A stretch of DNA of 64,000 nucleotides from Klebsormidium nitens (taxonomy: Eukaryota > Plantae > Klebsormidiophyceae). The translations under genes and the position numbers were made by a program. This document shows positions 13,401-35,900 of the stretch, piece by piece; position 1 is the stretch's first letter; every line of letters starts with the position of its first letter. Location: positions 296,990 through 360,989 of the forward strand of contig DF236953.1 of the NCBI GenBank assembly GCA_000708835.1, in the 5' to 3' direction. The notes under the pieces are model-generated. The model was not told the origin of the DNA, ran no database searches, and saw nothing but the letters and a program-made list of their open reading frames with translations.

Positions 13401-14392
13401 GTTGAAGCTGCACATGCCAAAGGTTGTCATTGTCTTTTTGTGCATCACGTACCTCATTATAAGTAGATATCTTTGAATTAGATGCCAAGCTGATCCCAAG
13501 AATCAAGGAAGGATCATTGTGCCTTATCTGGAACTTGTGTTATGATGAAAAAACAGATGGTTCCTTGACCACCTTGTGTCAAGTGGTGACCTAGTGGTGT
13601 CTGTTCTTGGAGAGACTTTGGTTAGAGCCCTAGTCCTAAGAAGAATTCACAAAGTGAAACTTTCTGCACAAGTAAGAGGACCAGCAGGCAAGGCAGGGCT
13701 AGAGAGTGAGGATAATAAAGCTTCACTTCAAGTGGGCTGATACAAATATCTCATGATGCTAAAAACTTTTTGACTTGAATGAGCTACTTGTCACGTCCAT
13801 TCGTGCGATGCCGACAACAATGAGGAGAGATGAAAGGGTTTGAACTACAGGAAAGCTGACCTGTAAGCGGTCCGCCTGCACTGCTCCTTGCTGCTAGTGG
13901 CACGGCGGCTTGCCTTGCCTCTACTGCTGCATTTTGAGGAGATTGTTTCGAACTTGAAGTGCCATTCTCCGTGGCTTTTGAAATGTGGCTCCCTGCCGCT
14001 CCCTCCACTCCACACATCGCTCTAGACTGAAAACCCTTTGCGGTCTCACCCAATGCCGGCTGCTGCGAGGTCGCGTCAAGCTGCGCTCCAAAGTATGCAT
14101 CGGCAGCGCGATCTACGGACCCTTTGGCAGCTTTCAAATGCCTCTTGAGAGTTGCATCCGCTACATGGGGAAGCATGCTCTTCAGCATTTGGACCTTGGA
14201 CTCCAAAGTATCGCACTGAGGTTCTGCGGCGGCCCCCCCATTGCCTCCTGTCTCTGCAGCAGAAGCGAAATATTGCGCAATCGCGGTCTCAATGCAACCA
14301 TTGGCACTCTGTAAGAGGCTAGCAGCTTGCACATTAGAAAGCTGGCCGTCGAGAAGGGAGACGAGATCATCTACCTTACCCACGGCTGCCAT
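1419..14392 (-). CDS. SNF2-family RING-finger helicase/E3 ligase (SHPRH/RAD5/RAD16-like) with N-terminal UBA-like and CUE-like domains. Exons approx.: 14392-13861, 13407-12344, 11981-11742, 10962-10657, 10055-9896, 9239-9052, 8106-7794, 7426-7320, 7261-7225 (uncertain), 6862-6657, 6126-6040, 5638-5566, 5038-4764, 4359-4105, 3460-3320, 2774-2630, 2200-2020, 1626-1419
   Basis: Phase-consistent splicing gives YQRKALSWMMTRE, GGLLCDEM|GLGKT (Walker A), TLVVVPASLLNQW, VVLDEAQ (Walker B), VVT|GTPI, IMIRRTK, LTRLRQACCHPQ, a C3HC4 RING (CPIC...CGHYFCSDC...CPLC), KSVIFSSW, GGAAGLTLTAAS and EAQAAAR|IHRLSQ. The DEAQ and LRQACCHPQ motifs are SHPRH-like. Confidence 0.92.
2972..3210. mobile_element. Truncated copy of a TA-flanked MITE family, in a SNF2 intron
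   Basis: Begins TA|ctgctgttcgcgtcaaagttggcacccgag, matching the terminal inverted repeat of the element at 11056-11335. Carries an internal inverted pair (tccttgatgttttcc / ggaaaacatcaaga). The right end is missing. Confidence 0.6.
4985..5380 (-). repeat. Degenerate tandem 'echo' (~150-160 bp period) of the acceptor and 5' edge of SNF2 exon 5038-4764
   Basis: agccggcc(c/a)gtgaaggcttc(t/c)gcgggt at ~5008 and ~5160, with a weaker copy at ~5320; cgacagtcgcctgac at ~5118 and ~5273. Confidence 0.75.
6135..6300. repeat. Low-complexity degenerate GGTTGAGA/GGGTTAAGA tract in an intron upstream of a SNF2 acceptor
   Basis: Repeated ggttgaga, ggtttgaga and ggggttaaga units, seen directly. They read as ctcaacc/cttaacc on the coding strand. 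Confidence 0.6.
8020..8670 (-). repeat. Three decaying intronic echo copies of the acceptor and 5' edge of SNF2 exon 8106-7794
   Basis: ggaccat(c/t)tc(a/g)gc(g/c)gcgacctg at ~8088 (real), ~8236 and ~8387, and gggccatctcggcggtgacctg at ~8638. The nearest copy still translates as VAAEMVLPPCTRVDIILRFSHAVTSYYQRV. Confidence 0.85.
9560..9960 (-). repeat. Two decaying intronic echo copies of the 3' edge and donor of the SNF2 Walker-B exon (10055-9896)
   Basis: gggagcaagctttctcacc...cgacccaggcgtg...gcatgatgctggacgcg at ~9879 (real) and ~9731, with a weaker copy at ~9584. ORF 9588-9776 begins MRRHAWVVTG, the same as the real exon end. Confidence 0.85.
11056..11335. mobile_element. ~280-bp MITE with long imperfect TIRs and a TA target-site duplication (Tc1/mariner-class, Stowaway-like), in a SNF2 intron
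   Basis: TA|ctgttgtttgcggcaaacttggcacccgagctcggatc... at the left end is the near reverse complement of ...gatcggagttcgagtgccaagtttgacgcaaacagcag|TA at the right end, over ~80 bp. TA at 11054-55 and 11336-37. Confidence 0.8.
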
Positions 14393-15247
14393 CTTAGAAG
14401 CCGCCTGAGCTCATGTACAGAATGTGTAGACCTCTTGAAAGAACCTGGCCACCATGGAGCTGCGGGAGCCTTCAAGTTCCTGTGGACATGATCATAGAGT
14501 GGCGCGGCGTCTTCTTTAGCTTTCGCGGGACACCGAAGTGCGACACTTGGCATCCGCATACGGCTGGGATCATTGTTTCCCGCCGATCGGACGGTTAGAA
14601 ACAGCCGATGTTCCTAGAAACCCGGTGACTGTTGGTCAACACCCGCCAAAATGCACATGCCTCGGAGCTTCAAAATTCAAACTCGCCAGCCTGAGCCTGA
14701 GGACATGGGACGCCGTGGAACAATGTTCGCGTGGGCGTTCACGTTGTTCATGCACTGCAAATATGCATTATACTTCCCATCTTCGGCTTTCACTTTTGTG
14801 AATTGCTTCGCACACATCGCATGACATGTGGCATCTTGCAGATAACGATCATCAATTGGTCATTCAATGATGCGGCACAGATTATAAATACATCTGCACT
14901 CAAACCCACATGCAGCCGGGCCCATCTTCAGCTTAGGCGGCACCTTTTGGCAACACATGATCATGGTGACTTCAAGTTGCCATGCCTCATGACACTCACC
15001 AGTACACCATGCATAGGCGAGTGAAATCCAACCTTAGCGGAAGATCGGACCAATTCTGCTATTTAGACGCACACCCCATTGCGCTGCAAACCGGCCAATA
15101 CCCGGTTGAGATGTGCCACAATCAACGGACAGGCTTTCGTGATCTGGATTCCAAGTTTGCCAGACCTAGACGGCGAGCTTGTTATCAATGGACCTCACTC
15201 CTTCATGTGGCAACTTTCCTTGTGCAGACGTGGATGTTTCCGTTCAT

Positions 15248-18200
15248 CTATCTGGAGCGATTGCTTCCTACTTCAACTTGCCGAGGGAAGTCTTTCGGGG
15301 TACCTGTTCGTATGCCCTCCTCTTCCAAAAACTCGGTCAGCTTCCCTCGTTGCCAGGCTTTCATGCTTCTGCAGAACAGCAAAGAGAACGTCGTCAGTGC
15401 GAGACAAGCCACGCACATCTTGGGCTGCAAAGTTATATCTCAGAGAGCCCGCACCTTTTGAACACCAACAGCAGAACTGCGTCTCCCTTCAAAAGCAGCT
15501 GCGTATCCGGGAGTTTACTTTCAGTCTTCACCTCCGTCTTCAACGAGAGAGAAATCAGAAGCCGACCAAAACGAGCTTCGGCAAAAAAGGAATCCCTCTG
15601 GCCCATGTCAAGGGCGGCCCGCTAAGATCTGTGGTAAAAGCGGTCAATCTACCGAATACGGCATGCAAACTTTTTGAGCGGACCGGGAGGACTCACTTCA
15701 GGTCGATGTGCGCCAAAACCATGCCCCCCGGAAACGCCCTTCTGGTCGCCCTGAACGCCTCCCGTACGGCAGACTCAAACAGATCAGGGGCGCTGTGCGC
15801 CGCCTCTTCGACGGGTGCATCCGCCCCGCTTTGCTCCGCCGAATTCCGACCCCTAGTGGAAGTTGAAACACCGTTTTCTGACGTGGAGGATTGAGGTAGC
15901 TTCTTGTCGGTCGGCCCGTTGCTAGAGGCTGTTCCCAAGGTCGAAGGCTCGCCTCGTTTCGCGAGAACTTTTGTTCCGTCTGCTGGATCGGTCATCGGCA
16001 AAGAGTAGCCCGAAAGAAGATGGCCCAGCCACACGCCATCGTGCCTGCAAAGCGGGACAGAATAGGTACCTATATTTATTTTTCTGGGGCATTCATTCGG
16101 AGTGATACATCTTCTTCTTTCCCTCTCTCGTCAAAGAGTCAGGACGATAGCTCTCCTTTCTGTCAACCGGACCATGTCCAGCACTTGTCGTGAACCAGCA
16201 TATCGTGAGTCGTCGCTCTCAATAGTGGCGCAAGGACTGAGACTCCGAACCTAGAAAGCGTCCACCTGTGCCCGACAGGTCAGAGAGGAGCACAGTGAGA
16301 GTTCTGTGCCCATATTGTCAACATTCAGATGAAAACAGTGTGCCCATATTGTCAACATTCAGATGTTTACTCGACTGGGCGGCCACAAGATTATTTCTAT
16401 CAACTGGGTTCAATGTCTCTCGCTTCAAATCCGCAATCGACCTGCACATTCCGCAAATGGATTCAGATGTTCACCAACATCGAATACCCACCAGCTCCTT
16501 CAACTGTTTATCAAGCGGCTCTGGAAACAACGTGAAGCACTGCACTTGACGTACCTTGCAACGTCACCATGACGTGGGGTGTAGTGGCCCCCTCCAAGCC
16601 CCAGCAAAACAGGCTGACCTTGGTCGTCACTGCAGAGGAGCCATAAGTCTTAGGCTTAGAGCCTGGTGGGGCAGTTCACGAGGATTGAAAGAGACAAAGC
16701 GTCGCCGTGGTTTACCAAACGGCAAATCCGATCATGTTTCTCTGCCAACTGGGCCATCTTCCGATGTATCGGTCACTAACAATATAAATGATTGTACCGT
16801 CAGACCGCCGAAAGGGTTTCAATCGGCTTCTTACCTGGACCAGCTTCCAAGGTCCGGTCCTCCGCCTAAGCCGAGCCCTTGCCAGAACAGCTGCAAGAAT
16901 CCAAAGTGTGTCCATCACAGATTCCAACGAGTCGGTAAAACCCTCATCGTCAGGACGTTCAAACGAAAGGCGGCAGACAAGTATGGAGCAGCGCTTGCGA
17001 AGACTGTGATGTGCGAAGGACGATGGGTCGCGAATAGGTCGTAGTACAGACGTTTGTAAGAAGCGTGCAGGAAAGAGCCACCAAACGAGTATGGAGATCG
17101 TCCTTTAAAGACGTGCAGCTTGCCACAGGCAATAGTTTCACGTTCTGTAATCCTCGCATTGCGCGTCGGGGCGGAATGTCAGAACGCAGAACAAGAGCTG
17201 ACTCGATAACAGCTTACCTCTGCAATCAACTCTGCTGCATCCACCCTCCCCCAGTGCTCCTCAGTGCTGCCTAGAAAGAGGGGGGCGAGGTCAGAAAACA
17301 GCCAATTTGGGGCTCATTCGTTGGCGGTTCCAAAGGAACGTAGACACTTCACAAAGACGGGAGACGGACTTGTTGGCACTTTCGTTTTCAGGTTTGACCC
17401 TTGCGTCTGAAGCTTCATAAGAAGAAACGATGGATCGAACGTCGGCACTCAAGCCGATCCTTCCAGAGCCCGGTCGCAACATCAGCATCGTCACTTGAAA
17501 TTCAGGTCTCTTCCCTGCCGTCCATCAACATTCTGCCAGCTTTGAGTAATCCAGGCGGATCCATCGTGATGCGAAAGACCGTCTCACCGATCTCGACAAA
17601 CATTGTAGGCGCCTCGAGGTACGGCCCATGGTGCGTTGCCTCCAGCGTGACCTGCATCAAGACAGGCAAGATGGGTCTCAGATTTTGAAATGCCTTATGC
17701 TAACTTCAATTTGCGACTACTTGGCAACTCGAATGATTTTGGCACTTTGTGGGTGAAGTTCTCGGATATGAATTGCAGACCTGAATCACAATCAGTGGCG
17801 CATCCAACGCCAGGTCTGCCTCAGTACTTGTTGCCAGATGTCGAATCTATGTTGTGCCACATCAGCAAGTAGGTACACTTCAGAACGCAAAGGCCCGAAA
17901 TCCGTAAACTACAGACAACGAATGGATCCCTCGTGGCTCGAGCAGATTCAAACAAAACTAAATTCAATAATATTTCCCCAGAAGCCTATGCAAGAACATT
18001 TCCCCCGAAGGCCTCCCAGGAATTAAATCAGATTTCCACCTCAAGTTGTCACTCACCTCGAATTCGGGAGTGAAGCCCCTCTCGGCCGCCAGCCTTTTCA
18101 GCAGTCTGAACCAGGAACCAACTCGGGTGCAAGGTGGAGAGACCCGCCCTGCTTTGCCGCCAGCTGGCGGCACCTCATTGGGCCCAAGGTGGGGCACGCC

Positions 18201-19387
18201 GATTGGGTGGACCGTGAACGCAGGCCGCGTTGAAGCTGCAACGTGCCTGCGTTGAGGGGATTGTACAACTAGTAAGCCAAGATCTTGATGGAGGGCGACC
18301 TTGACAATAAAAGAGTGGAATGTTGACTTTTAATTTCAGCTGTTTGAACTATTTCAAGGGCAAGATCTGATCAAGTACTGATTTAGCACACCAGTCTGTA
18401 CAAGCGGTCAGATGCAGGTCTTCAAGTAGAATTCTTCATCGCATACATGACGTACTTCAGCGGAAGCAATTGCTATTGTGCTACTTGCTTCAAGTTTCAA
18501 ACGGGGCCAATGCGTCCAGCAACGTCCTGCACGTGCTCTTCAAAATATGCACTGGCTGCCAACGACGCCAAACCCCCAAAAAATGTAAACTCTTGATCGC
18601 ACAGGAAAGAAGCAAGTCTCTTAGATTCTCACCCAAGAAAAACCTCATTCATGGCCTACCTGCTCATGAAGATGACTTCGCGCACAGCCTCTCCAGTGCC
18701 CAGATGCCACCGGTGGTCCAGGTAGTCCTCAAAGATTGTCTTGTTCTTCAGTTGCCACATCCGGACGCTGCCGTGACGCCAGGTGCGGAGCCCCTGCATT
18801 GGTGCAGACAAATTTTCTAGTAACAGCAGGTGATGTCGCAAGGGACTGTGTATACAGGTTTGAAGAAGTGCTAAGGATTTGACATCAAAAGTGGGGAGGG
18901 AAGTAGGTCTTTGAAAGTTGTGGTTGGCATGCTGCAGGCTTTTCAAGAGCTGGCCGCATCAATCTGCTTCAAGCCGCATGCTTGCAGAAGACGAGTCAGA
19001 AATCCTAGCTGGGTAAAAGCAGTTGCCCATTTCACGAGGTTGCATACATCAGTCATATTCCGATTGTCAAAAAACCAACTTGCAATGCCGCGAGAGTATC
19101 CATGCCAGCTAATCAACCACTTTTCTCCGAGAGCTTTAGAAAGGCACAATCCAGCCTCAACACCATCTGCTGCATAACGACTCTGCCCGTCGCACCACTC
19201 AATGCCACTCAGGTGCTCAAGTTGTGAATCTCACCTCAACTGTCTCTGCTTCGCTCCAGCCCCCCAGCTCGATCAGCTTTCGAGACGGGCCTATTGACGC
19301 GATATCCGCCTCCGTAGCAATGATCAGGGTGATTCCAGCTTCCAGATCAACAAAGGGGAAAACTTCTGGAGCGAGGTCCATCTGCAT
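15248..19387 (-). CDS. DTD2: Archaeal/plant-type D-aminoacyl-tRNA deacylase (DTD2/GEK1), ~397 aa. Exons: 19387-19235, 18793-18660, 18246-18057, 17651-17588, 17270-17218, 16890-16835, 16629-16555, 16044-15697, 15368-15248
   Basis: Nine phase-consistent GT-AG exons give TLIIATEADIAS, EVIFMSRHVAASTRPAFTVHPIG, FE|VTLEATHHGP...PTMFVEIG|STEEHW, LFWQGLGLGG, VLLGLGGGHYTPRH, WLGHLLSGYSLPM, AFPGGMVLAHIDLK|SMKAWQR...FLEEEGI. These are collinear with the plant GEK1 motifs. The start codon is tentative. Confidence 0.93.
16305..16365. repeat. Exact 27-bp direct duplication (tgtgcccatattgtcaacattcagatg, 34-bp period) in a DTD2 intron
   Basis: Copies at 16305-16331 and 16339-16365, seen directly. Confidence 0.95.
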
Positions 19388-21631: not shown

Positions 21632-24600
21632 ATGCACCGGCAGCCAATGAGCAGCGTCGGCAGCAGCCTGGACGAGTACGGCAGGGCCGAGATGGAGTGC
21701 GACATCCCCCGCGTGCCCAGCGAGCGCTCGATGAGCTCAAAAGGGGCGACTAACGGACTCCGCACCCCCAGCCGCCGCACGCCCTCCCCCAAGCGCTTTG
21801 AGAAGCACCCCCTGCTTCGGTTTTTGACCGGACAGGCGCTCCTGAACGTCCTGCTAGCGGTCTACATCGTGTTCACCCTCCACTACTTTTACAGCCAGAA
21901 CACCCTGAGCTCCTCGGGGTGCATTGACGCGATGTCGGGCGCGTCGCCGAACGAGCTGCAGTACGTGCACAACCAGGCGCGCCCGGTGTTGTTACATAGC
22001 AGTAGGAAGGTGCAGGCGGGGATCGTGAATGGGTGGCACGATCCGAGGACCACGGTGGCGACGTGTACGACGCACTGGGCGAAGGGGATCGACAGGGTGG
22101 CGGCCGAGAAGCTGAAGAAGATGAGGATCTTCTTCTCGCTGAACCTGCGGGACAACGATGGAGGTGAGCCTTGCTCCTCGTCTTTTGTTCTGCTGGTGTG
22201 GAGATGTTGGGCTCTTGACTACCTGAATGGAGGTGCAGTTGTTTGAAGTGGATGGGAAGCCTGCTAAGCTTCAATGCCAACCCTTGATCAGTGATCATAT
22301 ACAGAGCTTTGCTCATTGTAAATGTTTAGATGGGGCTCATTCAGGGTGTTGTCGATCCGCCTCAGCTTTGTTGCGCTTGCTGTCGCGGCGCTTACTTTTT
22401 TGGGGTTGTAGTTGAACATGATGATTAAGCACTGCTCTGCTGAGGTGGAAAGTTTACCTGTATCTGTTGGACTCTAGGCTCAATTCTCTCTTCTACCTTA
22501 AAATGCGGACCTGGAGCTGTGTTATCTTGCATCTGCGAGATTTTGTTCATCCATAACATTGGTATTTTGTAACAAGTTTGTTGGTTGAATTGCGTAACTG
22601 CGTTCTTCTGCGCACGTACCACCACATATTGCATGATCGTATGCTCTGAGAGGAGGCCCCTGCGGGTGCGCTCCTCCAACCTAGAAGAGTTGTGGGTTAG
22701 GAGATGTAGCATATGTGGCAAACGTAGAATAAGAGGCACTGCGACAAGCAGTTCTGACAAGAAGTGCGCCGTTCGCCGCAGAATCTAAGGAAGGGAACCC
22801 CCTTGTGCCTCATGTTCAAAACTTTGGTGGTGAAGCTATGGTGCCTTGCAGGGTTGCTTTTCATTGGCTCGAAAGCAACGTTGATTTCCGTATGGCCTTG
22901 CCAGTGTGTCGCTACGTATTCATTCGTCTGCTGTCGAGAGGGTTGGGTCCACTTTAGATAGAGTGACAAGATCGAGAAGATCAGTCACCGTCGAATCTTC
23001 TAAACAATCTCCACATGATCACTTAGACAATCTTCTTACGCAACCACGGAACCCCAGAACCACCTGACGGGTCCGTTAACCGAGACGTAAGCTTGTTTAA
23101 TTATCCGGTGGGGTACAAAGACCTCGTTGCCCAGACCCCTGAAAACTTCTTTGCAGTCACGGCGCACCTGTTCCATGAGCTGACCCGGGTTCTGGAGCGG
23201 CTCTCTCCCCACAAAACGTTTCTCTCCATCTACGAAAGCGGGTCCACAGACGCAACTAGTCTGAGGCTGGAAACACTGGCGGCTACGCTGAACGGGATGG
23301 AGATCCCGCATTCAATAGTCGCGAACGGGATCGAGAAGCATGTGCACGAGACACGCATCGAGTTCCTGGCGAAGGTCCGGAATAAAGGGCTTGCTCCGCT
23401 TTTGCGACAGGTGGGTATGACCGCGGTTGTTCTTTCACAAGTCTTGTCTGCTGCTTTGTGCTTGTCGTTTTGGCTTGAGGTGGTCTGTCTTTCCCATGAC
23501 CTGCGTGATTCAAGGGTCTTCTGCAAACCTTTCAGGGGCATGAATTGTTGAGAAGCAGCTCGTATGCCCCTTCATCAAATGTTTCTGCTAATAAGAAAGT
23601 TGGAATGCTGCTTACGTTAGGCTATAGGGCTTCGTCTCCTGCTGACTTCTGCTCTTTAGCTGCCACGTGCCTTCTCAGGTTGTTGGCGTTTGGACAATTC
23701 TGGCTGGTAAGCAGATCAGAAGAGCCAAATTGGACAGTCGCTCTATGTGAAGCAGATGTAATCATAGACCTCACAGATACTGCATTGGTTTGTCTACGTT
23801 CTAGTTTACCACTTCCCTGGTTCGTGCAGATCTGGGACGGCCCTCACGGCAACGAGACCGGGCGCTACTTTGCGATGCAACCATCGTCAGAGAGCCCCCT
23901 CACGGGAATCGACGTCTGGTCTGACGATCGTCAAGTTCTGGGAATAGAGCTCTACACGGGAAAGAACAAGGCCGGCCGGTTTGGCTCTCCGGGGGGGGTC
24001 AAGCGGTCGCTGCATCTAGAGTTGGGAGAAGAATTTGTCGAGGCGGAAGGGAGCGGGGAAAACCAGGTTTTGTCCCTGTGGATAACGACGAGTCAGGGGC
24101 GGAAGGTGGGGGGAGGCTGTGCCACGTGTGTGCGCCAGTGGATGACGCGTGGAAAGAGGCTATTGGCCATCGCGGGGTTCGGGGGGTGGGGCTTTGAGCT
24201 GCAGCCGGGCGTGAACTCGATCAGCTTTGCGTGGGAGCTGCCACGGCAGGTGCGTTATTCCTGGCTCAGGGTTTACCAATCAATCCCTAGAAAAAACATA
24301 TAGGGAGCTCGTAAGCTTCGGATATGATTACTTCTTTCATGAAAGGCCGCGGTTTGTGGTAGCTTAGACTGTGCCGGAAGGTCGCGTTCTGATGGTTGAG
24401 GTGGAATCTACTCGGTCGCATCGCTCAGCGAACCAAGGACTCCTTCTTCGTTCCGGGAGCCTTCCCGAAGTTGGACGACATTCAGGCTTTCTGCTTCGTG
24501 AGTGGGCTTTCAAAACCCAGGTTCTCTGTCTTCTAGAAGCGTCCAAGACAACTCTGACCGTCGCACCTTGTGCCTGCACCCTGCTACGCCTAGAGCAACT

Positions 24601-27600
24601 CGTTTTTTTTTCAGCTTCGTAAGACGCACTGAACCCCTCATGAAGTCTCAAATTGTTCTTGTGCCTTCTTGTCACCAAAGAGGAGACCCTTCGGGGATGC
24701 CGCCAGCTTGAGCAGCCTATGCCCACTGTAAAGGGTGCGAGTCCCCCACCTCCTATTCCCACCATATCAGAGCTGATTCCCTTCATATTTGCAGGCGCGG
24801 AGATACGACCGCGTGGTCTACCTGAATGACGTCTACTTCTGCGCCGAGGACGTCATCCTGCTGCTCATGCACGACACCGCGCACATGGCGACAGCTGTCG
24901 ACACGCTCGGGGTGCCCCCCGAGGCGAACGCGACGCGGCTCTGGATGTACGACTGGTGGGTGGCGCGGGACATCGACGGGCAGACGATGAAGGTGCCGTT
25001 CCCGCCAACCAAGGTCAACCAGAGCATCAAGTGGTGAGAGTGTAGACCATTCCATGCTACTTTTGGGCTTTGGGGGTTCAAAATAAGAGCTTCGAATGTA
25101 TGACTGGTTGGTGGTGGCGCGGGACATCGACGGGCAGACCATGAAGGTGCCGTTCCCGCCAACCAAGGTCAACCAGAGCATCAAGTGGTGAGCGTTCGGC
25201 AGTTTGCGTTCTTTTAGTCGCTCTAGGGTTTCCGAATCTTGTAAATCAGCGCTTTGAAGTGGTAGGTGTGAAAGTGGTGAGTGACCTGCGACATTTACGG
25301 GCAGACGATGACGGCGCCCTTCCCGCCGATACAGGTCAATTAGAGCATCGGACGGGAAGACTATAAGCAGTCGTTTGGGCAAACTTGCCTTGGCTTTCGG
25401 GTTTGTTTTTGGTCTATGGATCTCCGCTAAAAGTACTGGTGCAAGCCCCTTCCCGTGCAACGAGATTGTGACTGTGGTTTCGCGGGTGTTCTACAGCAAG
25501 AAACTCGACTCCCCCTCCAGCCGCCTTTAGCTCCACAAACCTTTTACCAATTTGTTTGCGCAGGTTTGAGGAGGGCAAGCCCATTCCCGTGTACTGCTCG
25601 AGCAACGGGGATGAATGACGTCGACCTGCATCTGTTGTCCCACAAAAACATCTAGATTCAATCCCGCTTGTTGATTAACCACCTCTATTGACACTAACCA
25701 GATTTCGCGTGTACAGGTTTGAGGAGGGCAAACCCATTCCCGTGTACTGCTCGTGCAACGGGATGGTGAGCGTCGACTCGCGCATATTCTACGACAAGAA
25801 GCTGACGTTCCGGTCCAAGAGCTGGCACGGGGAGTGCTCCGCATCCGAGTACTCGCACTTTTGTGCGGACGTGTGGAGAGTCTACGGTCCGGACACGCGC
25901 ATTGTGATGGACGGGCGGGTCGTTGTGGCCTATCAAGAGCAGGAGGTGGGTTGTACTCTCAGATATTTGGATTTATCATTTGGGCTTGATGCATCTGCCT
26001 TCATGAGAGTTCTTGGGTCATGAGACCAGGTCTTTTATGAAACGGGACTTGGGGTTTTTGTTAGAAAGGTATTGTGCTACGGATGAAACTTGGTGTTACC
26101 GAATGTGCTTCGGCCTACCAAGAACAGGAGGTGGGCTGTCCGGAATGTTATCCCGCGCTAGAACCTGAGGTATGGGTTTGTTTTGAGGTTTGAGAATAAA
26201 TTGGCAGGTAGTTGTGGCTTATCAGGAGCAGGTGGGCCGTACTTTGAGATCTCGGGATTTAGGTTCGGGTTTGATGCAACGGTTCTCGTGAGCGTTTTGG
26301 GGTTAGTAGAGCTGCTTTTATGGAACTGGTTTTGGGGTCTCGAGTGTACTCTTGTAGTAGGGATGTCGTGCTTCGGATAATACCTGATGCATGTCGAATG
26401 GTCATTGGCGTATCAAGAGCAGGAGGTGGGCCGTCCTCAAATCAGACGATGTAGGGGTTGAGGGTAGGGTTATGTTTTTTGTTCCATAGCGGACGGGCGG
26501 GTTGTTGTGACTTATCAGGACCACATGGGGGGCTGTCCGGAAAGGTCACGGCTTTAGGATTCGGGTTAGAACTTAACCCTTGAGGTTCGAGGGTGATATC
26601 CGGGTGTTGGGAGAATGTCGTGCTTGCGGATGGGGAGATTGTGGTTTGCCAAGAGCAGAGAACTGGCCGGAGCCTGCTCGCTTAAACATACTCAATCTTC
26701 TGCCTTGCACTCCCACCGTAGATTCCTCACTTGTATGACCGCCTCAGGGCTTTGAGTTGCCTTTCGGCCCCTCTGTTCGCTGTGGTGGAGGCATGCAGCC
26801 AGTGACCAGCAAAAAGCGGTACCCTTTGCAGAGCTTCAGCCATTCCAGATGTGACACAAAGACAAAGCCCCAGCCCCTAAGATCTAAAAGTAGAAGGAAA
26901 GTCACCTGAGCTACAGTTTTTGGCTTCCCCTTGGAACGGAGTCACACGTTCATAGCTCACCCCAATTTTCCAAGATGTGGATCCACTACATAACTGCCAA
27001 CCTCAGATTCCAGAACCCCAACGTCGTCTCAGAAGATTCATCGGACCCACTTTCAAGTATTCGTACTGCAGTGGAGACACGTGGCCATGGCCCGCCGAAA
27101 AGCGGTCCCCCCCCACATGTCCACCCCGCAAGACGTGGGCATCCGACCAAACCCGTGGCTGCCTCTACCCCCCGTAGATCGCACCCTTGTGTATAACACG
27201 CTCAAGCATATACCAGCCCACATCGAACCACCCATTACAACCAGGTAAGGGTCTCTTGCTTTCTTTGACTAGTCACAAGCTTGTATGCTAACGAAGGGCA
27301 GCGATGAGATTGTTGATATGCTTAGATCTTTCCAGTCCGTCATGAGAATTGGCTTGTGACATCCGTGTGCTGGCTTTGACCGCTCAGCGATGAATTAAGC
27401 ACGACATCAAAATGCAATCTAGCGGCCAGCCCTCTTCTTTGATCCGCTCAGATTGTCTCTTGCTCGTTTGACAAGCTGCCTATGCTCCATTCTTCCGTTT
27501 CGGACTTCGTTCTTTCCTGCTCCAATTCCCCGCACCTCCCTCCCGTTCTTCGGTGCAAAACGAGCTATTCGTGGAGTCCTATCCTCGGCGCAGAGGATTC

Positions 27601-30600
27601 CGAAATCCGTCCCCTTCTGAGGCGCTTTCTCAACTGCAGCTGCGTACCGATTCACGAGGACAGCGCGCGCGAGGCAGTTCCGCGCTGGGCATACGAGATC
27701 ATGACCCCCAACCCGCTCGCGAGCCCGCCCAACGACTGGAAGTGGTCCGCGTTGAGCCAAATTCGAGACGGTGAGACCGTCGTGCTTTCCAACGTAGCAT
27801 TAGTGCCTTACCGGAACCGTATGGTTCCGAGTAAATAAATAAACTTTTGCCCCTCGGCCCCTCGGAAAGCTACATTACCTGTCTTCCATTCGATAGTGAT
27901 TTCCCGGATCAGTAAATTATCGCCGACTTGCTGTCGGAATCAAAAATACATCAACCTGTCACCCCCTTAGCAGCCTTTTGGGGGGCAAAATGCGCTCGGG
28001 AGCGTTGTCAGGGCGGATTCGGAAACAGGGTCGGATGCATTGAAATTATTTTTCAAAAGAGGTCGTAATCAATCAAATAATCGTCACTCTTGAGCATTTG
28101 GAATCATTCCGTTCCGGTGCGGTAAGCTCTAGCTATAGTAAGCTCCTACATCAACAATGAAAACCTACACTCAAAATCCAACCCACAGAATCGCCTGCTC
28201 CGTACGCATACCCACCCAAACCCCCAAAGTGACGTCATCACGTCCCAGACTGGTTAGCTTACCGTTGCGAAAGCTAATTATTGCACCTTCGAAGATCGTT
28301 CGCCTAAGTTTCCTTCTTGTTCGGATTCGTTGCATCATTGTGTCAATTTTTGGTTTAAAGATGCCTCGTACGGCCCAACGTTTTGACCTTTTCCGTGTGC
28401 CTGTTTCCTTTGCATCCGCCAGTTCAACCAGCCCCGATGCCACGAACTGTCATTCTAGGCTCTTGCATTAGAAGTGTTTGAGTTCGTGTTGAGTACTCTT
28501 TAGTGTCGCTACGTGACCTGCGAAAGTGTCAATTAGGCGTTCCCAATGTTACACCTTGAAATTCGAGCTCGTTAATTGCCGGACATGCTTAGAGCAAAAG
28601 TAACGAGGCGCAGAGCGGGAGACTAATCCTCGGCGCTGGAAAGAGCGACCCTAGCCCAACCTCTTGAACAATTTTCATTGCGGCGTTCGGTTTCGGGCAG
28701 ATTTCCGCTTCGCGATTCTCCCTGAAGAGAATCTTCTGTCCTTAGTCAAGGCCGCACAGAAAGACACCGGTCCACAGAATCATTGCGCCATTCCTACTTT
28801 CGAAAGCCTTTGGAAAGAGAGTGAATCTCGTTCTCCCGGTCAGAACAGTTTAAGGCTCGACTCGAGGTGTTTGAATCTGAATTGCAACCGAGGCCTTAGC
28901 TCAACCCGGTCCGTTCTTTGCAGACTGGAAGCTGCCGCGTGAGAGCGAGCCTGGTTTGTCTCTCAGTCACAACACAGCCGCAGGTGAGCCTTGGTGTTGT
29001 TACTCATAAGCCTCTTCTTCTTGCATCTGAGAACGCCGCTTTCCCTAGTCGCGAGCATGGGCTTCTTCGTTTTGATCTTGGCTACTTTGGAAAAGGCCGG
29101 ATCATATCTCGATGAGAAAGAACCGATCGTAAGGAACGGGCTAAGCCAATGTTTACCAAGAAGTGGGGGGCTCCTCGTCCACCTTTTGTTGGTACCTCGG
29201 GGAGTGTAGTTTTCAACGGCTTTCAGCAGCGATAGCTGGAAGAGTAAAAGCGCAGAGTCTGATCTGTCTCGGAGCCTTAGTCTATCCGTTCGCGGCTCCA
29301 TAATGAGATCATTTTCTTTCTTAGTCCTTCCCACTCTCGGGGTCTAAGCCTGTAAAGCCTGACACTCGGCCTCGGCAAAGAGCGCCTTCGCAGTGCCCGA
29401 AAGATCAGCACGCGTAAGCCCCAAAGGAAGAGCACTTTGCAGCGCATGAAAAGTCAGCACTCGTAATTCCCAAAACCTTATTCGCACCGTCTCTTCACAG
29501 GCCCTCTCAACGCGTACGGCTACCCGCTGTCGCCCCACGCGTCGCGGCTCTACAGCGGGAACGTAATCCGGATCGGGGAGGGCAGCCGGCTCGTCTCCAG
29601 AAACATGAAGTACATGCTGTTGTTCCAGTACGATCGCAGAGTGGTGACGTATCAGCTGGGTTTCCCGCTGAAAGCGGTGTCCGAGTGGCAGCCCGACACG
29701 CTGAGCAGCGTCCACGTGGCAATGCAGAGGGATGGTGAGCCCGCCACGTGGCATGCTTAGTTGTCCTTTCTGAGCCGGTTCTGCGTTTCGAGTGGCAGCC
29801 CGACACGCTCAGCAGCGTCCACGTGGCAATGCAGACGGATGGTGAGCCCGACACGTGGCATGCTTGCTTCGTCTTTTCGACATCTTTCCTTGAGTTCTGG
29901 TAGAACACGCCGAAGGGCGTCCATATGGCAATGCAGAGGGATGGTGAGCCCGCCACGTGGCACGCTTACTTGGCCCTTTTGACCTGTTTTTGTGTTCTGA
30001 GGGGAGCCTGAGAATGGCGTCCCTGTGGCAATGCGGAAGGACTGTGAGCCTGTAACGTGGCGTGTCCCCTTCGAGAGCAAAGGGAATACTGACGTATGGA
30101 TCTCTTCCTGTGCTAATTCCAGATTCTCAGTCAGCGAATTACCTTCGAAGCCAAGAACGACAAGCCAGTCCTCAACTCTCGCCTCTGGAGTGAAGAATCC
30201 CTTCCATTCTCGCGACTTACAAGCCTCATTTCTGTTCATGCAGGCAATGTAGTGCTGTCTGGGACGAACGGCGCCCCCAAATGGTCCTCCGAGACAGCCG
30301 CCGGGAACAAAGCGTACATGGAGCTGTCCAACAACGGAACGCTCGAGGTGCGGGTAGACACCAACGGAGCGTCGCGGCTGCTCTGGACTAAGTCCACCAT
30401 CGCCCCTCTGAATCCAAGTAAAGGTGCGGCGCTTCGTGACGTACATAGCATGCGTTATCTGCGTTTCCTTGTCTCTTGTTTTGCTTGGGGATATAGCATA
30501 TAGCATCTTGAAACTACCGTCGAGGCCAAAAAGGTGGTGATAGCCCCGTCCAAACGTTCGTGTCCTTTTCGTACGAAGATCGGTCGTTTGACCGGAAGAT

Positions 30601-31697
30601 TGCCCCTCGTGTCTTTGGAAACTGTAGAAGAAAGCGTCGAGGTTGGGAACTGGAGGGTTTCCTCACGCGTGTGCTTTCAAGAGGGCGAAATTTGATGTCC
30701 GTTTTCCTAAGAAAAGATGTCTGTGCTTGCTTAGGAGACGAGGATTGGTTTTTCCAGCACCCCAGGGGCGCTAGTTTGACTGGGCTTCTCAAGGCTTTCA
30801 AAAGATGGCTCATGTAGCGTTGCGGAAGTTGTGGCGGCGAATACTGTCGTTCGAGACGCTGTTTCGATGCCTCTTGAATGTAAGTAATGTTACTGAGTAC
30901 TTCTTCAGTAGTTGACAATCTCAGCGAGGAACTCGTCACAATCTCGATGCAATCAGACAAGACCTTTTCACTATGAGCATCTTCCTTTGCCGGCATAATT
31001 GATCAGGGCGTCGACACATTCGGTTGCATTTAAAGAGTGCCCCTGGATTACCTGGAGCACGTTAGAACAAGGCCTTGGTTTGTATGGACCTTACCTTAAC
31101 AAGCTCCTCAACCATTCACGGCATACTTCAAACGAGGCCTTTTCCCCTAAGGCCCTTCTCTTCTTCTTTGGAGCAGGCCCGGCTCCCATGGGCGTTGGCG
31201 GCGGCATTTTTGTTTCTTTAACGCTACTCGAGGGCGCGCATATAAACGAGGACTTAGGGGAGCTGTTAGAAGGGCTCTGTGTAAACATGGTCGGCCGCAT
31301 CTTCGTCTCGGTTGCAACTGTGGGGCCGACGAAATGGCCCCCTTGGCGGTCGGCCATGTCCGGTATTCTGATCGCCCATCTCGCGTCGCACAATAATACG
31401 GGGTGGTTTGAAACGGCCGAGGAAGCGGTTAAGTATCACGAGGGCAATTATCGGACGTTTGCGGCGGACCGCGAGGGCTTATGCTCGCTCCGGATCAACC
31501 CGGAAGCCAGGGGCTTGTACACCGGAGACATTCTGTATGATTTCGTGATCGAGTCGTTAGAAAGAAAAGACAAGGATTGCTGTGAAAACATGTTCCAAGG
31601 TGACGTGGAGCGGGTTAGCATAGATTGTAGTTGTCGAATGTGTCCGGAAAAAAGGCCCGTAAAAATAGCGGCTGGCAAAGCAGTAGGGACAACTTAA
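21632..31697 (+). CDS. Type II membrane GT69/CAP59 (cryptococcal mannosyltransferase-like) glycosyltransferase with an inserted jacalin-like lectin domain, a C-terminal bulb-type (B-lectin) domain and an unassigned final domain; ~970 aa. Exons: 21632-22163, 23157-23410, 23830-24249 (jacalin), 24795-25033, 25717-25945, 27072-27244, 27640-27770, 29501-29734 and 30244-30423 (B-lectin), 31177-31697 (tentative)
   Basis: N-terminal TM (LLNVLLAVYIVFTLHYFY). CAP59 motifs IFFSLNLRDN, FLSIYESGSTD, RIEFLAKVRNKGLAPL, YDRVVYLNDVYFC, YDWWVARDIDG, PVYCSCNG, FRSKSWHGECSASE...FCAD and VVVAY. All ten exons join in phase with canonical GT-AG sites. Exons 1-5 are solid; the links to exons 6-10 rest on phase and splice-site quality only. 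Confidence 0.85.
24945..25350 (+). repeat. Echo copies of the 3' edge and donor of GT69 exon 4
   Basis: gtggcgcgggacatcgacgggcagac(g/c)atgaaggtgccgttcccgccaaccaaggtcaaccagagcatcaagtggtgag is repeated at ~25115-25192 with one mismatch, and a decayed third copy lies at ~25288-25345. Confidence 0.92.
25440..25770 (+). repeat. Echo copies of the acceptor and 5' edge of GT69 exon 5
   Basis: caggtttgaggagggcaa(g/a)cccattcccgtgtactgctcg(a/t)gcaacggg at 25561 (echo, frameshifted to a stop) and 25714 (real), with a decayed copy at ~25441. Confidence 0.9.
25905..26660 (+). repeat. About five decaying echo copies of the 3' edge and donor of GT69 exon 5
   Basis: Variants of gttgtggcctatcaagagcaggaggtggg at ~25922 (real), ~26112, ~26211, ~26405, ~26500 and ~26637. 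Confidence 0.8.
29670..30070 (+). repeat. Three echo copies of the 3' edge and donor of the first B-lectin exon
   Basis: gcgtccacgtggcaatgcaga(g/c)ggatggtgagcccg at ~29708 (real), ~29815 and ~29917, with a decayed copy at ~30018. Confidence 0.88.
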
Positions 31698-32902
31698 GTT
31701 GTAAGGCATAATTTATGTACATTGGATGCTGCTGACTATGCGGGCTCAACCTGCCCCGACGTTAACCTTGGTCAAAATAGAGGTCAATTGAGGATCGTAC
31801 GGCTTAGGTGGTATCAATCTTCGGCTGAAGGTTTAGCAACCCACAGAAACGCAAGGCTATTGTTACTCTTTGTTTAAATTTGACGCGGTTAAAACCGCAC
31901 CTGTTCTTTAAGCTTCAGTAGCTCTTCCCGCAACCGACACGGTGGGACCGGCTTGACCGGTTGACGAACTAGCTATAAGTCGGTGCATCATGTCAATAGA
32001 CGTGCAGCGTCATGCTGCGAATCATTTGGACTTATCCTTTCGTCAGAGCCCGGGCGGCCGCGCGGCCTGCACATCATGCAGGCCGCCAGCTGTAATTGCC
32101 GCGCGTGCAGGTCTGCAACTCTACTAGATATACAGGCTAGATCGGCTTGTCCATGCAGATCAGTGCTTGGCACGTGCAGGCACATGTGCGACCCTTATCG
32201 CGAGAGCGGGCGCACTTAATTGCACTGCATGTGCTGAAAAACAATCGAGAGGAATTTAAATCGCGTCGATCAGATACAGCTGGCATGTGCGCATGTATAT
32301 GGCAGCTGTCATATATGCAACTAGTGCATGATAAGCTATACACATGTATATGTCGGACATGGGGACCGCAAGCTCATACATACATATACCTGGAGCTAGT
32401 ACTGTATCATTACGCGTGCAACTTGGCCAGGGCCGGCAAATGCAATTATAGTAACTTAACTACCAGCAAGTGCAGCTGTACGTTCCAGTTATCCGCGAGT
32501 CCTGATTCAAGCGCATGCCTTTGTACTATAAGGCAGCTAGACATGCACCATGAGCAGCGGACGGTCGACCGCATGCATGTCCACATCGGGCTGCCATCGA
32601 TCATGCACCGAGTCACATTCCGACGGTCAATGAACACTGCCGGCCGGGCCTTATAGTTTTTCACAGACGTTCAATATCTGTTTAATGTACGGGTCAGGAG
32701 TGCAAAACGTGTGCGTCGTTTTGGAAACGGCTCGACCATCATGAAGCAGGAAAACACGTGTCACTTTTGCACTGATCATTCAAGTGCAAGCAAATATCGA
32801 AATGCCATGCCTTACCTTGTGAGAAGGCGCATTGTTTGACATCCTTACACTGATATGAAAACCTCTTCTTAACGTTCTTCAATAGGCTTCCATACGCTCC
32901 CG

Positions 32903-35900
32903 TCACACTACGTAACCGGCCTCTTTACATGCATTTCGTGCCGCGTGTATCTCTCCTTTGAGCTTTCGAGGGTGATTCGTCACAATCGCCGCAACTCCGA
33001 TGTCTAGCAGATTACGCATTATCCCTCCTTCATTGACAGTCCACGTGTATATTTCCTTGCTGTGCCTGCAAAAGGAGGACAGAAGGAGGAAAGATATTGT
33101 CAAGCAACAAATTTCACCGCTCTTGTCAACTTCAAAACGATGACTGCTCTTCACATGGAGGCAAGATGGCTGGTTACACATCTTCGAGACTCGGGCTTCA
33201 CTTGAGCCTTTACAGTGGCAAAAAGCATCTGAGATGACATGTAGAGTAACTCCTTCCTCAAAGTGCTTTAAGAACACTTTTGAATCCCCGTATCCAACCC
33301 TTGCAAGGGAAGAAAAACAGCCTTGATTTCATGACCGGTCATTGTCTACGCTTAGGAGTCACTACAAGATCCATGAGAGCAGAAAGGCCCCTTCCAACGG
33401 CAGCAGACCAGTTCGAGCGCTTTGTACAAACATGGTGGATGCAACTTTCAGGAGCCTTCGGAATCGCACTCCCTCCGAGATGTCATTCCCCACGAACAAC
33501 CCGATCCTCCCCCAATCAAAAATCTCACATCAGGCACCTGCGCGGAATCTACGGCACATACAGCTGTCTCCGTCCATCTTGCCACCGGGTTTCCAAGTTC
33601 ATGCAGACTTCCTGATCTTGGACCGTCCGATTGGCAATGGAACTGTATCCGACGGCTTACAATGGGGGACCAGACATTGGAAATTGATACTGGGGTGGCG
33701 AGTTGACGTGAAGAGCTGAACCTTTGCGCTAGTTTCACCAGCGTTTCATCGACGACCGCCCAGTGGGCCCCGACAACCTGCATTCCCGCGTGCCTCACAA
33801 AGCTCTCCTCCCTCCGGTTGGGATGGGTCTCGTTGTTTAGGATATACCCGACCTGTGCCGACGGTCAGAAGTTAGAGGCGACTTGCAGTCATCGAAGACC
33901 ACTTCTAGTCCAACACGGGGAGCGGGTGTCTCCAGGCATCTTGAATCTTCGACAGTCATCAGAGCCCACTTGCGACTGACGGTGATATGAAACTAAGCAT
34001 TGAGTTCGACCCGTGAGTAGAGAAGCGTCTCGAGTCCCGTGCCCACCCTTATGTAGGGACGTCCAGGATTCAAAAAGGCAAACCGCCCGCCGACCACGCC
34101 CTTAGAAAGGTCAAAATCTCACCAAGGGTGACATTGGCCCTATCTCCTGGTCCAGAAGGGTCGTTGCGGGGATTTGGTGACCCCCCTTTGTCAAGCGTTG
34201 CTTTGGGGGGGTTCGTAAACCGAGTGCGGCTAAGTTCGGTCCAAAGCGAGCAGTAGGACTCGAGAAAGAATGACAAAAGTTCTGGCTTGAGACTTCATTC
34301 GAGTCCATGAAATTCTCAAAACATTCTTCTGAGACTGTGCGCCCACAGCCGGTGTCAATTGTCTGAGTGTGCATCCAAGACGTCTGCGAAAACGGTCTCA
34401 GGTCTTTGATTGTTGATGATGCTTTAGAAGCCCTGCCCGACACACACAGCAGGAGAAGCAAGGAGCAGCACGGGTCTCAAGGGATAAGCACCTTTCGCAA
34501 GGGTTCCAACGCTTGCACCGCGAGGGGGAGCGTGTCGTACTTGGCCCACACGAGGCAGTTGGTGCAGCCCGCCCTGTTCATCTGTGAAGAGAAGCGTAGT
34601 GAATGGTTGAGAAAGTGAACTTCCATGGAAAAAAAAGGAGAAGAAGGGTAGATCTCCTGCGGACGGTTTGGTGCAGCCAGCCGTGTTAATATGCGAAGAC
34701 AGACGTAGTGATTGTTTGAATAAGTGGAGTCCCATAGAAGAGCAGAAAAGGCGAAGCGTGGATCTCCTGCAAACGGAAACCAGTTGTCACATCAAGGGAG
34801 ACTTGGCGGAAAGGAGAAGACACGGACCTTCTGCCCACGCTTTGCAGCGACCTGCAGTACGTCACCGTTCTCGCATGTGCGCGAGTAGAGATCGCTGACC
34901 ACAATCAACGACATCTTCCGCCGTGTCAATAAGATTAAAACCTTAAATTCCAAGAAAGCATTGTAAGTCAGTGGTGAAAAGGTGCCTTTCGCAGGCCTGG
35001 AGGGCACAGCACTGTCAAACTGATGCTTTTCTCTCGACTTGTGACGCATCAGGAACAGATCAGGAAGGGCCGGACAACTGATCCCCACATATGCGCCCAT
35101 CCCTGACATCTTCCGAGAAGCCCTCCGTCTCAAGCGGACAACACTGACAAGACTGACAGCGCCTCCAATTCCCAATACTGATGTTCCACGCAAGACCGAG
35201 ATGATCGCTCCGTACATACATCCCGTCGACCGTTGGACCCTAAACCCCAAGCGGACGACAGAACGACTTGGAGAGGGCTCGAGAACTCCAAGAGTGATGC
35301 ACCGCACAGAGTTGACGAGATTGCTCACCACATCCACGACGTCTTGCGCCAGGCCTTCCTCTCCACGTGGCGGCCCGATCTTGACGTCCACCACAATCTG
35401 AACCAAGTGCTTCGACACTAGCTGCAGGAACAAAAGCGGAACGCCTTGACCACTACCAGCGCAGCGCGTCTTATCACTAGATTAAAGAGGTAATAAGACA
35501 CTATTAGCTGCAAGACAAATTAAAATCACCGTCAGTACAGGCGTCAAAATCGCAAGAGCATCGAACAATGAGGCTCCCGTTGTGCATCGATGCTAGCTGC
35601 AGGTCAAAAGCGGAACGCCGTTGGGAATCCTTAGCACAGCGCATCGGAGATCAAGAATATCGAGTATCCGACCTTTTTTGTTCCCGAGAGAGCTTCGAAC
35701 CTTTTGCATGCTTGGTTGTCAAAGCTCCCAGATCTAGTTGCAGTCTTTCGTTCATAATCAAGCGAACAGAGTCTGACCACTTTAAGGATCTTAGGATCCT
35801 CGAGATCTCAATGCGTGACGCTGGTAGAATTCGAGAGTAGTTGTCCGAAGCCAAATCCGTGGCTTGTGACCTTCAGTTGCACGATGATGTGATTCATAAC

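Follow-up and report, generated by a model that had tools for sequence, protein, structure and literature searches.

A GT69-type glycosyltransferase gene of Klebsormidium nitens is spliced to a B-lectin domain and a conserved terminal exon

We analysed a window of 64,000 nt from Klebsormidium nitens (GCA_000708835.1, contig DF236953.1, positions 296,990-360,989 of the forward strand); all coordinates below are positions within this window, with position 1 as its first letter. Its + strand carries a gene in which segments of a GT69 catalytic domain are followed by a linker of three small exons, two B-lectin exons and a terminal coding exon (Table 1). Transcript data came from spliced contigs of four runs belonging to four studies, and the RNA origin of these runs was inferred from the spliced joints in the contigs.

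Table 1. Features of the GT69/B-lectin gene, in window coordinates.
Feature	Position	Strand	Evidence
ORF segment with likely start codon and type II signal anchor	21632..22243	+	ORF listing, Kyte-Doolittle
GT69 catalytic domain, N-terminal part, ORF segment	23093..23548	+	CAP59_mtransfer
Jacalin-like segment within GT69 domain	ORF 23545-24300	+	weak Pfam Jacalin match
GT69 catalytic domain, middle part, ORF segment	24789..25034	+	CAP59_mtransfer
GT69 catalytic domain, last exon	25717..25945	+	CAP59_mtransfer, RNA contigs
Linker exon e6, 57 codons, exon frame 0 open	27072..27244	+	joints 25945/27072, 27244/27640
Linker exon e7, 43 codons, highly conserved	27640..27770	+	joints
Linker exon e7b, 60 nt	28924..28983	+	joints 27770/28924, 28983/29501, all four runs
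B-lectin exon e8	29501..29734	+	RNA joints, B_lectin homology
Intronic tandem repeat, period 102 bp	29815..30061	+	TRF, 2.4 copies
B-lectin exon e9	30244..30423	+	RNA joints, weak B_lectin match
Terminal coding exon e10, 172 residues	31177..31697	+	joint 30423/31177, four runs

The putative signal anchor occupies residues 65-83 (LTGQALLNVLLAVYIVFTL), with a Kyte-Doolittle 19-mer mean of 1.9. It is the one hydrophobic 19-mer found and lies N-terminally, in agreement with the type II membrane topology of GT69; no further hydrophobic anchor was detected in e6, e7, e8, e9 or e10 by Kyte-Doolittle scan. The RNA contigs reach approximately 2.1 kb 5' of 25716, and we infer that the anchor segment is part of the transcript. 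Three ORF segments together span positions 13-242 of the Pfam CAP59_mtransfer profile (PF11735), each exceeding the cut-off of 28.8 bits. The N-terminal part scores 61.1 bits (E 1.7e-16; profile positions 13-110 of 242), the middle part 52.9 bits (113-177) and the last exon 32.9 bits (187-242). This last exon terminates in ...VAYQEQE in phase 0 and is represented in the four runs by contig pieces 25716-25943 with a joint to 27070 (+2); the loose 5' end at 25716 in all four RNA contigs reads the end of the middle segment. The ORF at 23545-24300 matches Pfam Jacalin (PF01419) at only 18.2 bits (E 0.0035, profile positions 2-125 of 136), below the cut-off of 22.

GT..AG joints were found at 25945/27072, 27244/27640, 27770/28924, 28983/29501, 29734/30244 and 30423/31177, and the series from first to last is chained within single contigs (X11 record 7, X4 record 10, X9 record 15). 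Depth across the four studies was 37-107 over exons versus 0-15 over introns, and the reading frame is open throughout the joined exons. The GT69 exons, the linker, the B-lectin exons and e10 are therefore one spliced transcript, with rare earlier-stopping isoforms possible. All four exons that an earlier note on this DNA had placed after the GT69 domain (27072-27244, 27640-27770, 29501-29734 and 30244-30423) are used in the RNA-derived contigs, with exactly the predicted boundaries. The open frames of the proposed joining were also borne out, but 27770 is not spliced directly to 29501, as e7b lies between them. With a length divisible by three, e7b leaves the frame of the later exons as it was. 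Nor is 30423 the end of the gene: the transcript is spliced on to e10, whose stop codon lies at 31695-31697 and is followed by a 3' UTR to roughly 31830-31910. Contigs pass 31500 by 326-412 nt.

Both lectin exons are phase 1/1, as the earlier note had read them. As a sign of exon shuffling, however, these phases are weak, because the non-lectin neighbours (28924-28983 and the start of the exon at 31177) are also phase 1. The intron between e8 and e9 contains a tandem repeat. Each of its units aligns, in degenerate form, with the final ~45 nt of e8 and the donor site of that exon. The contigs show no splicing from the repeated donor copies and use only the donor at 29734, and a single joint in contig X4 that "goes back" is most likely an assembly effect caused by the repeat.

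Searching 1.84 billion proteins by phmmer with e8 alone (29503-29733) returned six non-self matches (E 1.1e-9 to 8.4e-4). All six carry Pfam B_lectin (PF01453) at 48-145 bits, so the earlier reading of the last two exons as a B-lectin is more than chance. In this representative library, the matches consist of a 57-residue fragment of a relative and unrelated B-lectin proteins, with no full-length entry. MMBL-family proteins are the best PDB matches for both exons: pyocin L1/L2 and monocot lectins for e8, and pyocin L2/L1 and putidacin for e9. Among the 30 atlas clusters nearest to e8 by features, 26 are B_lectin. The Pfam B_lectin profile, scanned against single exons only, gave a mixed result, as e9 matched weakly (14.6 bits, E 0.048) and e8 had no match, both under the gathering score of 32.4. 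On P0004 and P0002, the matches of e8 and e9 abut, each covering one half of a single B-lectin repeat; the e8 match stops at residue 513 of P0004 and that of e9 begins at 515, with the split Gly codon between them. Judged by homology, the domain encoded by e8 and e9 is a member of the B_lectin/GNA family.

Three tandem subdomain motif positions can be read in this domain, within one unit of ~110 residues. Exon e8 encodes subdomain I (QYDRRVVTY) and subdomain II up to its midpoint (..AMQRDG), and e9 encodes the rest of subdomain II (NVVLS..) together with subdomain III (ELSNNGTLE), so that the exon split falls inside the second motif (QxDG/N). The canonical QxDxNxVxY is present at none of the three sites of the window copy (QYDRRVVTY, QRDGNVVLS, ELSNNGTLE): site I has Arg for Asn, site II has Ser for Tyr, and site III is degenerate. 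The site readings of the earlier note, which had all three deviating, were correct. For the Jacalin half of its two-lectin reading, the match stays under the Pfam cut-off. Classical mannose binding is doubtful because there is no canonical sugar-binding site.

To assess conservation, we used a comparison set of two relatives, the JGI relative and L003 (run SRR23617307). Exon order is the same in both, while the introns are unalignable. Amino-acid identity in the two relatives is 89% and 75% for e6 and 98% and 67% for e7, and e7b is conserved in both. Values of dN/dS are 0.16 for e6, 0.03 for e7, 0.02 for e7b, 0.06 for e8, 0.13 for e9, 0.09 for e10 and 0.12 for the catalytic exon. By this estimate, the lectin exons are under purifying selection comparable to that on the catalytic exon. 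Site I (QYDRRVVTY) is identical in the three species at dS > 2. The Tyr position of site II is Ser in the window copy, Thr in L003 and Tyr in the JGI relative, which has a fully canonical site II (QTDGNVVLY, P0001). In the JGI relative, e7b and e8 are ~11 kb apart, and no GT69 exons lie within 10 kb upstream of e8; a separate lectin gene in that species was considered and rejected when the next 9 kb proved to hold GT69 exons, upstream of the ~11-kb intron. No paralogues were detected by tblastn within the 64-kb window.

The terminal exon encodes a conserved alpha/beta domain with 7 Cys, and homologues were found only in the two relatives. It has no Pfam match (E up to 10), no PDB sequence match and nothing among the atlas features (best 0.81), and hhalign against the N-terminal GT69 segment gave a probability of 0.15%. 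A model of e10, of pLDDT 60 and built from a 3-sequence alignment, is weakly GT-A-like by shape, with VIA-align wide Z up to 8.2 and atlas TM of 0.50-0.57 to Glycos_transf_2 clusters; Foldseek against PDB gave a probability up to 0.84 and E at best 0.016. No DxD follows strand 4 of the model.

We consider it probable that the product is a type II GT69 enzyme with a lumenal glycan-binding B-lectin module that guides the transferase, plus a conserved C-terminal domain. In this interpretation, the + strand gene would encode a type II membrane glycosyltransferase of the Cap59/Cmt1 type. Its lumenal part is predicted to run from the catalytic domain through the conserved linker to a single two-exon GNA/B_lectin domain and then the 172-residue alpha/beta domain. 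The lectin domain might act like those appended to other Golgi glycosyltransferases, binding a glycan on the acceptor or growing product and keeping the catalytic domain there. Catalysis held in place by the lectin could then set acceptor choice or processivity. Since the site I block does not vary across the three species even though QxDxNxVxY is nowhere complete, the ligand is probably something other than plain mannose bound classically.

B-lectin domains of plant S-locus receptor kinases have a structural, oligomerisation or protein-binding role, and a comparable module that no longer binds sugar is conceivable here, although we regard it as unlikely. The deviation of all three sites in the window copy and the variable Tyr of site II (Ser, Thr, Tyr) would fit such a module, as would the strong purifying selection, which is compatible with any conserved function. 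Retention of a canonical site II in the JGI relative argues for sugar binding, however, as do the invariant Q, D, V and Y of site I in three species and the general tendency of lectin domains on carbohydrate-active enzymes to bind glycans. That the lectin exons are a separate downstream gene, or unexpressed, is highly improbable. Such an arrangement could be imagined from the two alternative frames of e6 that stop near 27177/27196 and from the ~11 kb between e7b and e8 in the JGI relative. The earlier note had named transcripts ending near 27177/27196 as the case against its fusion, and none were seen: the contigs splice onward through e6 in the frame that is open, splice joints connect all exons from 25945 to 31177 in four studies, and exon order is kept in both relatives.

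Another reading is an enzyme with two catalytic domains, in which the lectin separates two active modules and e10 acts as a hidden GT-A-like domain that binds nucleotide sugars. It is suggested by three structure searches in which GT-A transferases and NDP-sugar enzymes prevail, and by the constraint on e10, which is as strong as that on the catalytic exon. We think this improbable, given that the poor model underlies these searches, that Z values below 8 are usual for Rossmann-like arrangements of any kind and that HAD hydrolases are among the structural matches too. Moreover, the Pfam, PDB-sequence and hhalign comparisons gave no signal, the DxD after strand 4 is missing, and at 172 residues the domain is roughly one third short of GT-A length. 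An extended version, which we put forward as speculation with a slim chance of being right, joins two proposals. In the first, the Arg-for-Asn change at site I would reflect adaptation of the GNA-type lectin to a ligand other than mannose, perhaps an acidic one. In the second, e10 would serve as a further module for nucleotide-sugar binding, specific to the lineage. Together they would make the protein a machine that both reads and writes, confined to Klebsormidiophyceae, in which the lectin lies between two modules resembling transferases.

The suggestion in the earlier note of a potentially new module was overstated, as "mannosyltransferase 1 (CMT1)/GNA" is already tabulated for three Klebsormidium nitens genes, kfl00329_0110, kfl00004_0390 and kfl00038_0250 (Van Holle and Van Damme 2019, PMC6362431, Supplementary Table 3). 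In that survey, the GT69-GNA fusion occurs in only one of 21 species, an early-diverging streptophyte alga, and no jacalin is recorded in K. nitens (PMC6362431). The tabulated rows share the GT69/CMT1-then-GNA domain pair and the organism with the window gene, which most probably is among them. They differ from the present account in being table rows without discussion, and in lacking the Jacalin-like insert, the C-terminal domain, the transcript evidence and the site analysis. The combination of GT69 and bulb lectin is thus largely known. Our additions are a gene model verified by transcripts, which gains one exon and a terminal domain, evidence that the lectin is under purifying selection, and a reading of its sites one by one.

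The founding members of GT69 are Cmt1/Cap59 of Cryptococcus neoformans, with GDP-Man alpha-1,3-mannosyltransferase activity. These and the algal protein share a CAP59_mtransfer catalytic domain and an N-terminal membrane anchor, while the fungal proteins are, to our knowledge, without lectin domains. With the GNA-family/MMBL lectins (snowdrop and daffodil agglutinins, pyocin L1/L2, putidacin L1), both lectin exons share sequence homology and the threefold QxDxNxVxY-type layout. The algal lectin differs from them in being a single domain inside a large enzyme, in having no Cys and in the deviation of all three sites.

Lectin-glycosyltransferase fusions are one way in which glycosylation is made dependent on pre-existing glycans. 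Polypeptide GalNAc-transferases (GT27) are type II Golgi GT-A enzymes with a C-terminal ricin-type lectin that reads existing glycans for further transfer, and their enzyme-then-lectin layout provides a working model for the algal protein, as an analogy of mechanism only, with no homology. A GT69-GNA fusion, in its predicted role, could inform how mannan-type polymers of wall or mucilage are assembled in lineages close to the origin of land plants. The lectin of GT27 is a beta-trefoil, whereas that of the algal GT69 would be a beta-prism II, the B_lectin fold being assigned here by homology.

The DNA of the window is present in 20 public runs from 7 studies, and four runs from four different studies were compared across 25600-31500. 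Contigs from these runs lack introns, with borders at GT..AG, and depth was 37-107 on exons compared to 0-15 on introns. Therefore the runs, while not recorded as RNA, derive from spliced RNA. The whole exon chain is found in single contigs (X11 record 7, X4 record 10 and X9 record 15; see table). An earlier note, made from sequence alone, had named four exons downstream of the GT69 catalytic exons. Each is open and free of stops in the implied frame, with a good acceptor ahead of it and a GT donor at its end, and the spliced contigs reproduce all of the proposed boundaries exactly. The proposed model was nevertheless incomplete, lacking a 60-nt exon, which leaves the frame unaffected because its length is a multiple of three, and the terminal exon. 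The latter is in frame with an ORF spanning 30999..31697 and ends at a TAA (31695-31697). Since contigs extend 326-412 nt past 31500, the 3' UTR is ~130-215 nt. Termination near 27177/27196, raised in the same note as the case against a fused gene, is excluded for the dominant transcript by splicing through to 31177 onward, though rare variants may occur. We consider the gene structure given by the spliced contigs to be almost certain.

Exons of the spliced chain and intronic copies of exon edges
Feature	Coordinates	Strand	Source
Exon (last GT69 catalytic exon)	25716-25945	+	single contigs
Exon	27072-27244	+	single contigs
Exon	27640-27770	+	single contigs
Exon, missed earlier, 60 nt	28924-28983	+	single contigs
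First lectin exon	29501-29734	+	single contigs
Second lectin exon	30244-30423	+	single contigs
Terminal exon, missed earlier	31177 onward	+	single contigs
Exon-edge copies, window	29815-30061		
Exon-edge copies, window	25087-25188, 25275-25349, 26205-26273, 26486-26545		
Exon-edge copies, closer relative (L003)	3366-3591, 2712-2822		
Exon-edge copies, JGI relative (L001)	10802-10837		

In several runs, low-depth contigs (5-15 vs ~95 on exons) cover introns at 27945-28952, 29724-30272 and 30395-31204; most simply, these are unspliced precursor or retained introns. In several introns the edge of the adjoining exon, along with its splice site, is repeated as degenerate tandem copies. The end of the first lectin exon, with its GTGAGCC donor, has three extra copies, the ends of two GT69 exons are also copied, and in the relatives the 5' part of the second lectin exon is copied. 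Only the authentic splice sites are in use in the contigs.

The lectin exons were searched one by one. A Pfam scan of 29503-29733 (77 aa) gave no match. With phmmer, the same segment had seven matches among 1.84 billion representative proteins: a 57-residue fragment from a relative, and six proteins (E 1.1e-9 to 8.4e-4), each with PF01453 B_lectin (48-145 bits). The second exon (30246-30422, 59 aa) matched PF01453 directly in the Pfam scan (E 0.048). For both exons independently, the best PDB-sequence matches, while weak, fall in this family (pyocin L1/L2, putidacin L1, daffodil and Polygonatum lectins), and 26 of the 30 named clusters nearest to the first exon by language-model features are B_lectin. 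The B-lectin assignment made in the earlier note is thus borne out, and homology predicts a beta-prism II fold. BLASTP of each exon against these six B-lectin proteins places the two as adjacent halves of one repeat. In one of these (P0004), the first exon aligns to residue 513 and the second from 515; the glycine between matches the split codon, so the second motif is cut by an intron (QRDG/NVVLS).

Two relatives were reached, one through the 57-residue fragment (a 74.7-kb JGI metagenome contig, L001/L002) and one through a homologue of the terminal domain (an 11.3-kb Logan contig, L003). The exons of this gene recur in both, with order and orientation unchanged, and nucleotide similarity is limited to exons, their immediate flanks and exon-edge copies within introns. 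Relative to L003, dS was 0.32-1.14, and dN/dS was 0.12 in the catalytic exon; the three linker exons gave 0.16, 0.03 and 0.02, the two lectin exons 0.06 and 0.13, and the terminal exon 0.09. Therefore, the lectin is constrained as much as the enzyme. The first lectin exon is preceded by an intron of 517 bp in the window vs ~11 kb in the JGI relative (L002, reverse complement, about 7724-18721; L001 up to 9928), where it perhaps holds a mobile element; other introns of that relative are also ~2x the window length. Downstream of the gene, four short blocks (window 32914-35432, L003 6133-8124) have 80-94% identity to the close relative and probably represent exons of the gene that follows.

The main rival to a sugar-binding role is that the lectin does not bind sugar and has a structural or protein-binding role instead. 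Sites I-III read QYDRRVVTY, QRDGNVVLS and ELSNNGTLE; each deviates, as had been noted, so none of the three is canonical. Around site I, a block of 21 residues is shared without change by all three species. The canonical Tyr at the last position of site II is kept in the more distant JGI relative, whose site is fully canonical (QTDG/NVVLY; L001 10964-11143, with database protein P0001); the window has Ser there and L003 has Thr.

The GT69 catalytic domain lies on upstream ORF segments, which match Pfam CAP59_mtransfer at 61.1 bits (profile 13-110), 52.9 bits (113-177) and 32.9 bits (187-242), with a weak, below cut-off Jacalin match (18.2 bits) between the first two pieces. The first ORF segment of the gene (21632..22243) has a single strong hydrophobic stretch and none was detected in the linker, lectin or terminal exons, which fits a type II anchor with the rest of the protein predicted to be lumenal. 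The terminal domain (172 residues, 7 Cys, with a CC..C.C..C cluster) had no match in Pfam or among PDB sequences and no convincing one in the atlas, and its only homologues within the size range searched are in the two relatives. A mediocre model from the three-sequence alignment (pLDDT 60, pTM 0.62) alternates strands and helices and is similar to the half of GT-A transferases that binds the nucleotide. In three shape searches this low-confidence model matched mostly GT-A transferases and NDP-sugar enzymes, but the scores (Foldseek E 0.016 or weaker, TM 0.50-0.57, Z up to 8.2) are within reach of a generic Rossmann-like arrangement. No DxD motif was found, and an hhalign comparison with the N-terminal GT69 segment was negative. 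We treat this region as a conserved domain without a named family or assigned function, with GT-A likeness as a lead from the model.

A 2019 survey (PMC6362431) lists three genes for Klebsormidium nitens in the row 'mannosyltransferase 1 (CMT1)/GNA' of Supplementary Table 3, and the number of K. nitens GNA genes in another supplementary file is likewise exactly three. They receive no discussion in the main text. In its core the finding had therefore been catalogued before. Our analysis adds a gene model verified by transcripts, the exon missed earlier, the terminal domain, an analysis of selection and the site readings.

Golgi transferases with lectin domains exist, such as the GT27 GalNAc-transferases. 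We lean slightly towards a comparable mechanism for the algal GT69-lectin protein, in which the lectin would attach to a glycan of the acceptor or the product and position the catalytic domain, by analogy with these lectin-bearing Golgi enzymes.
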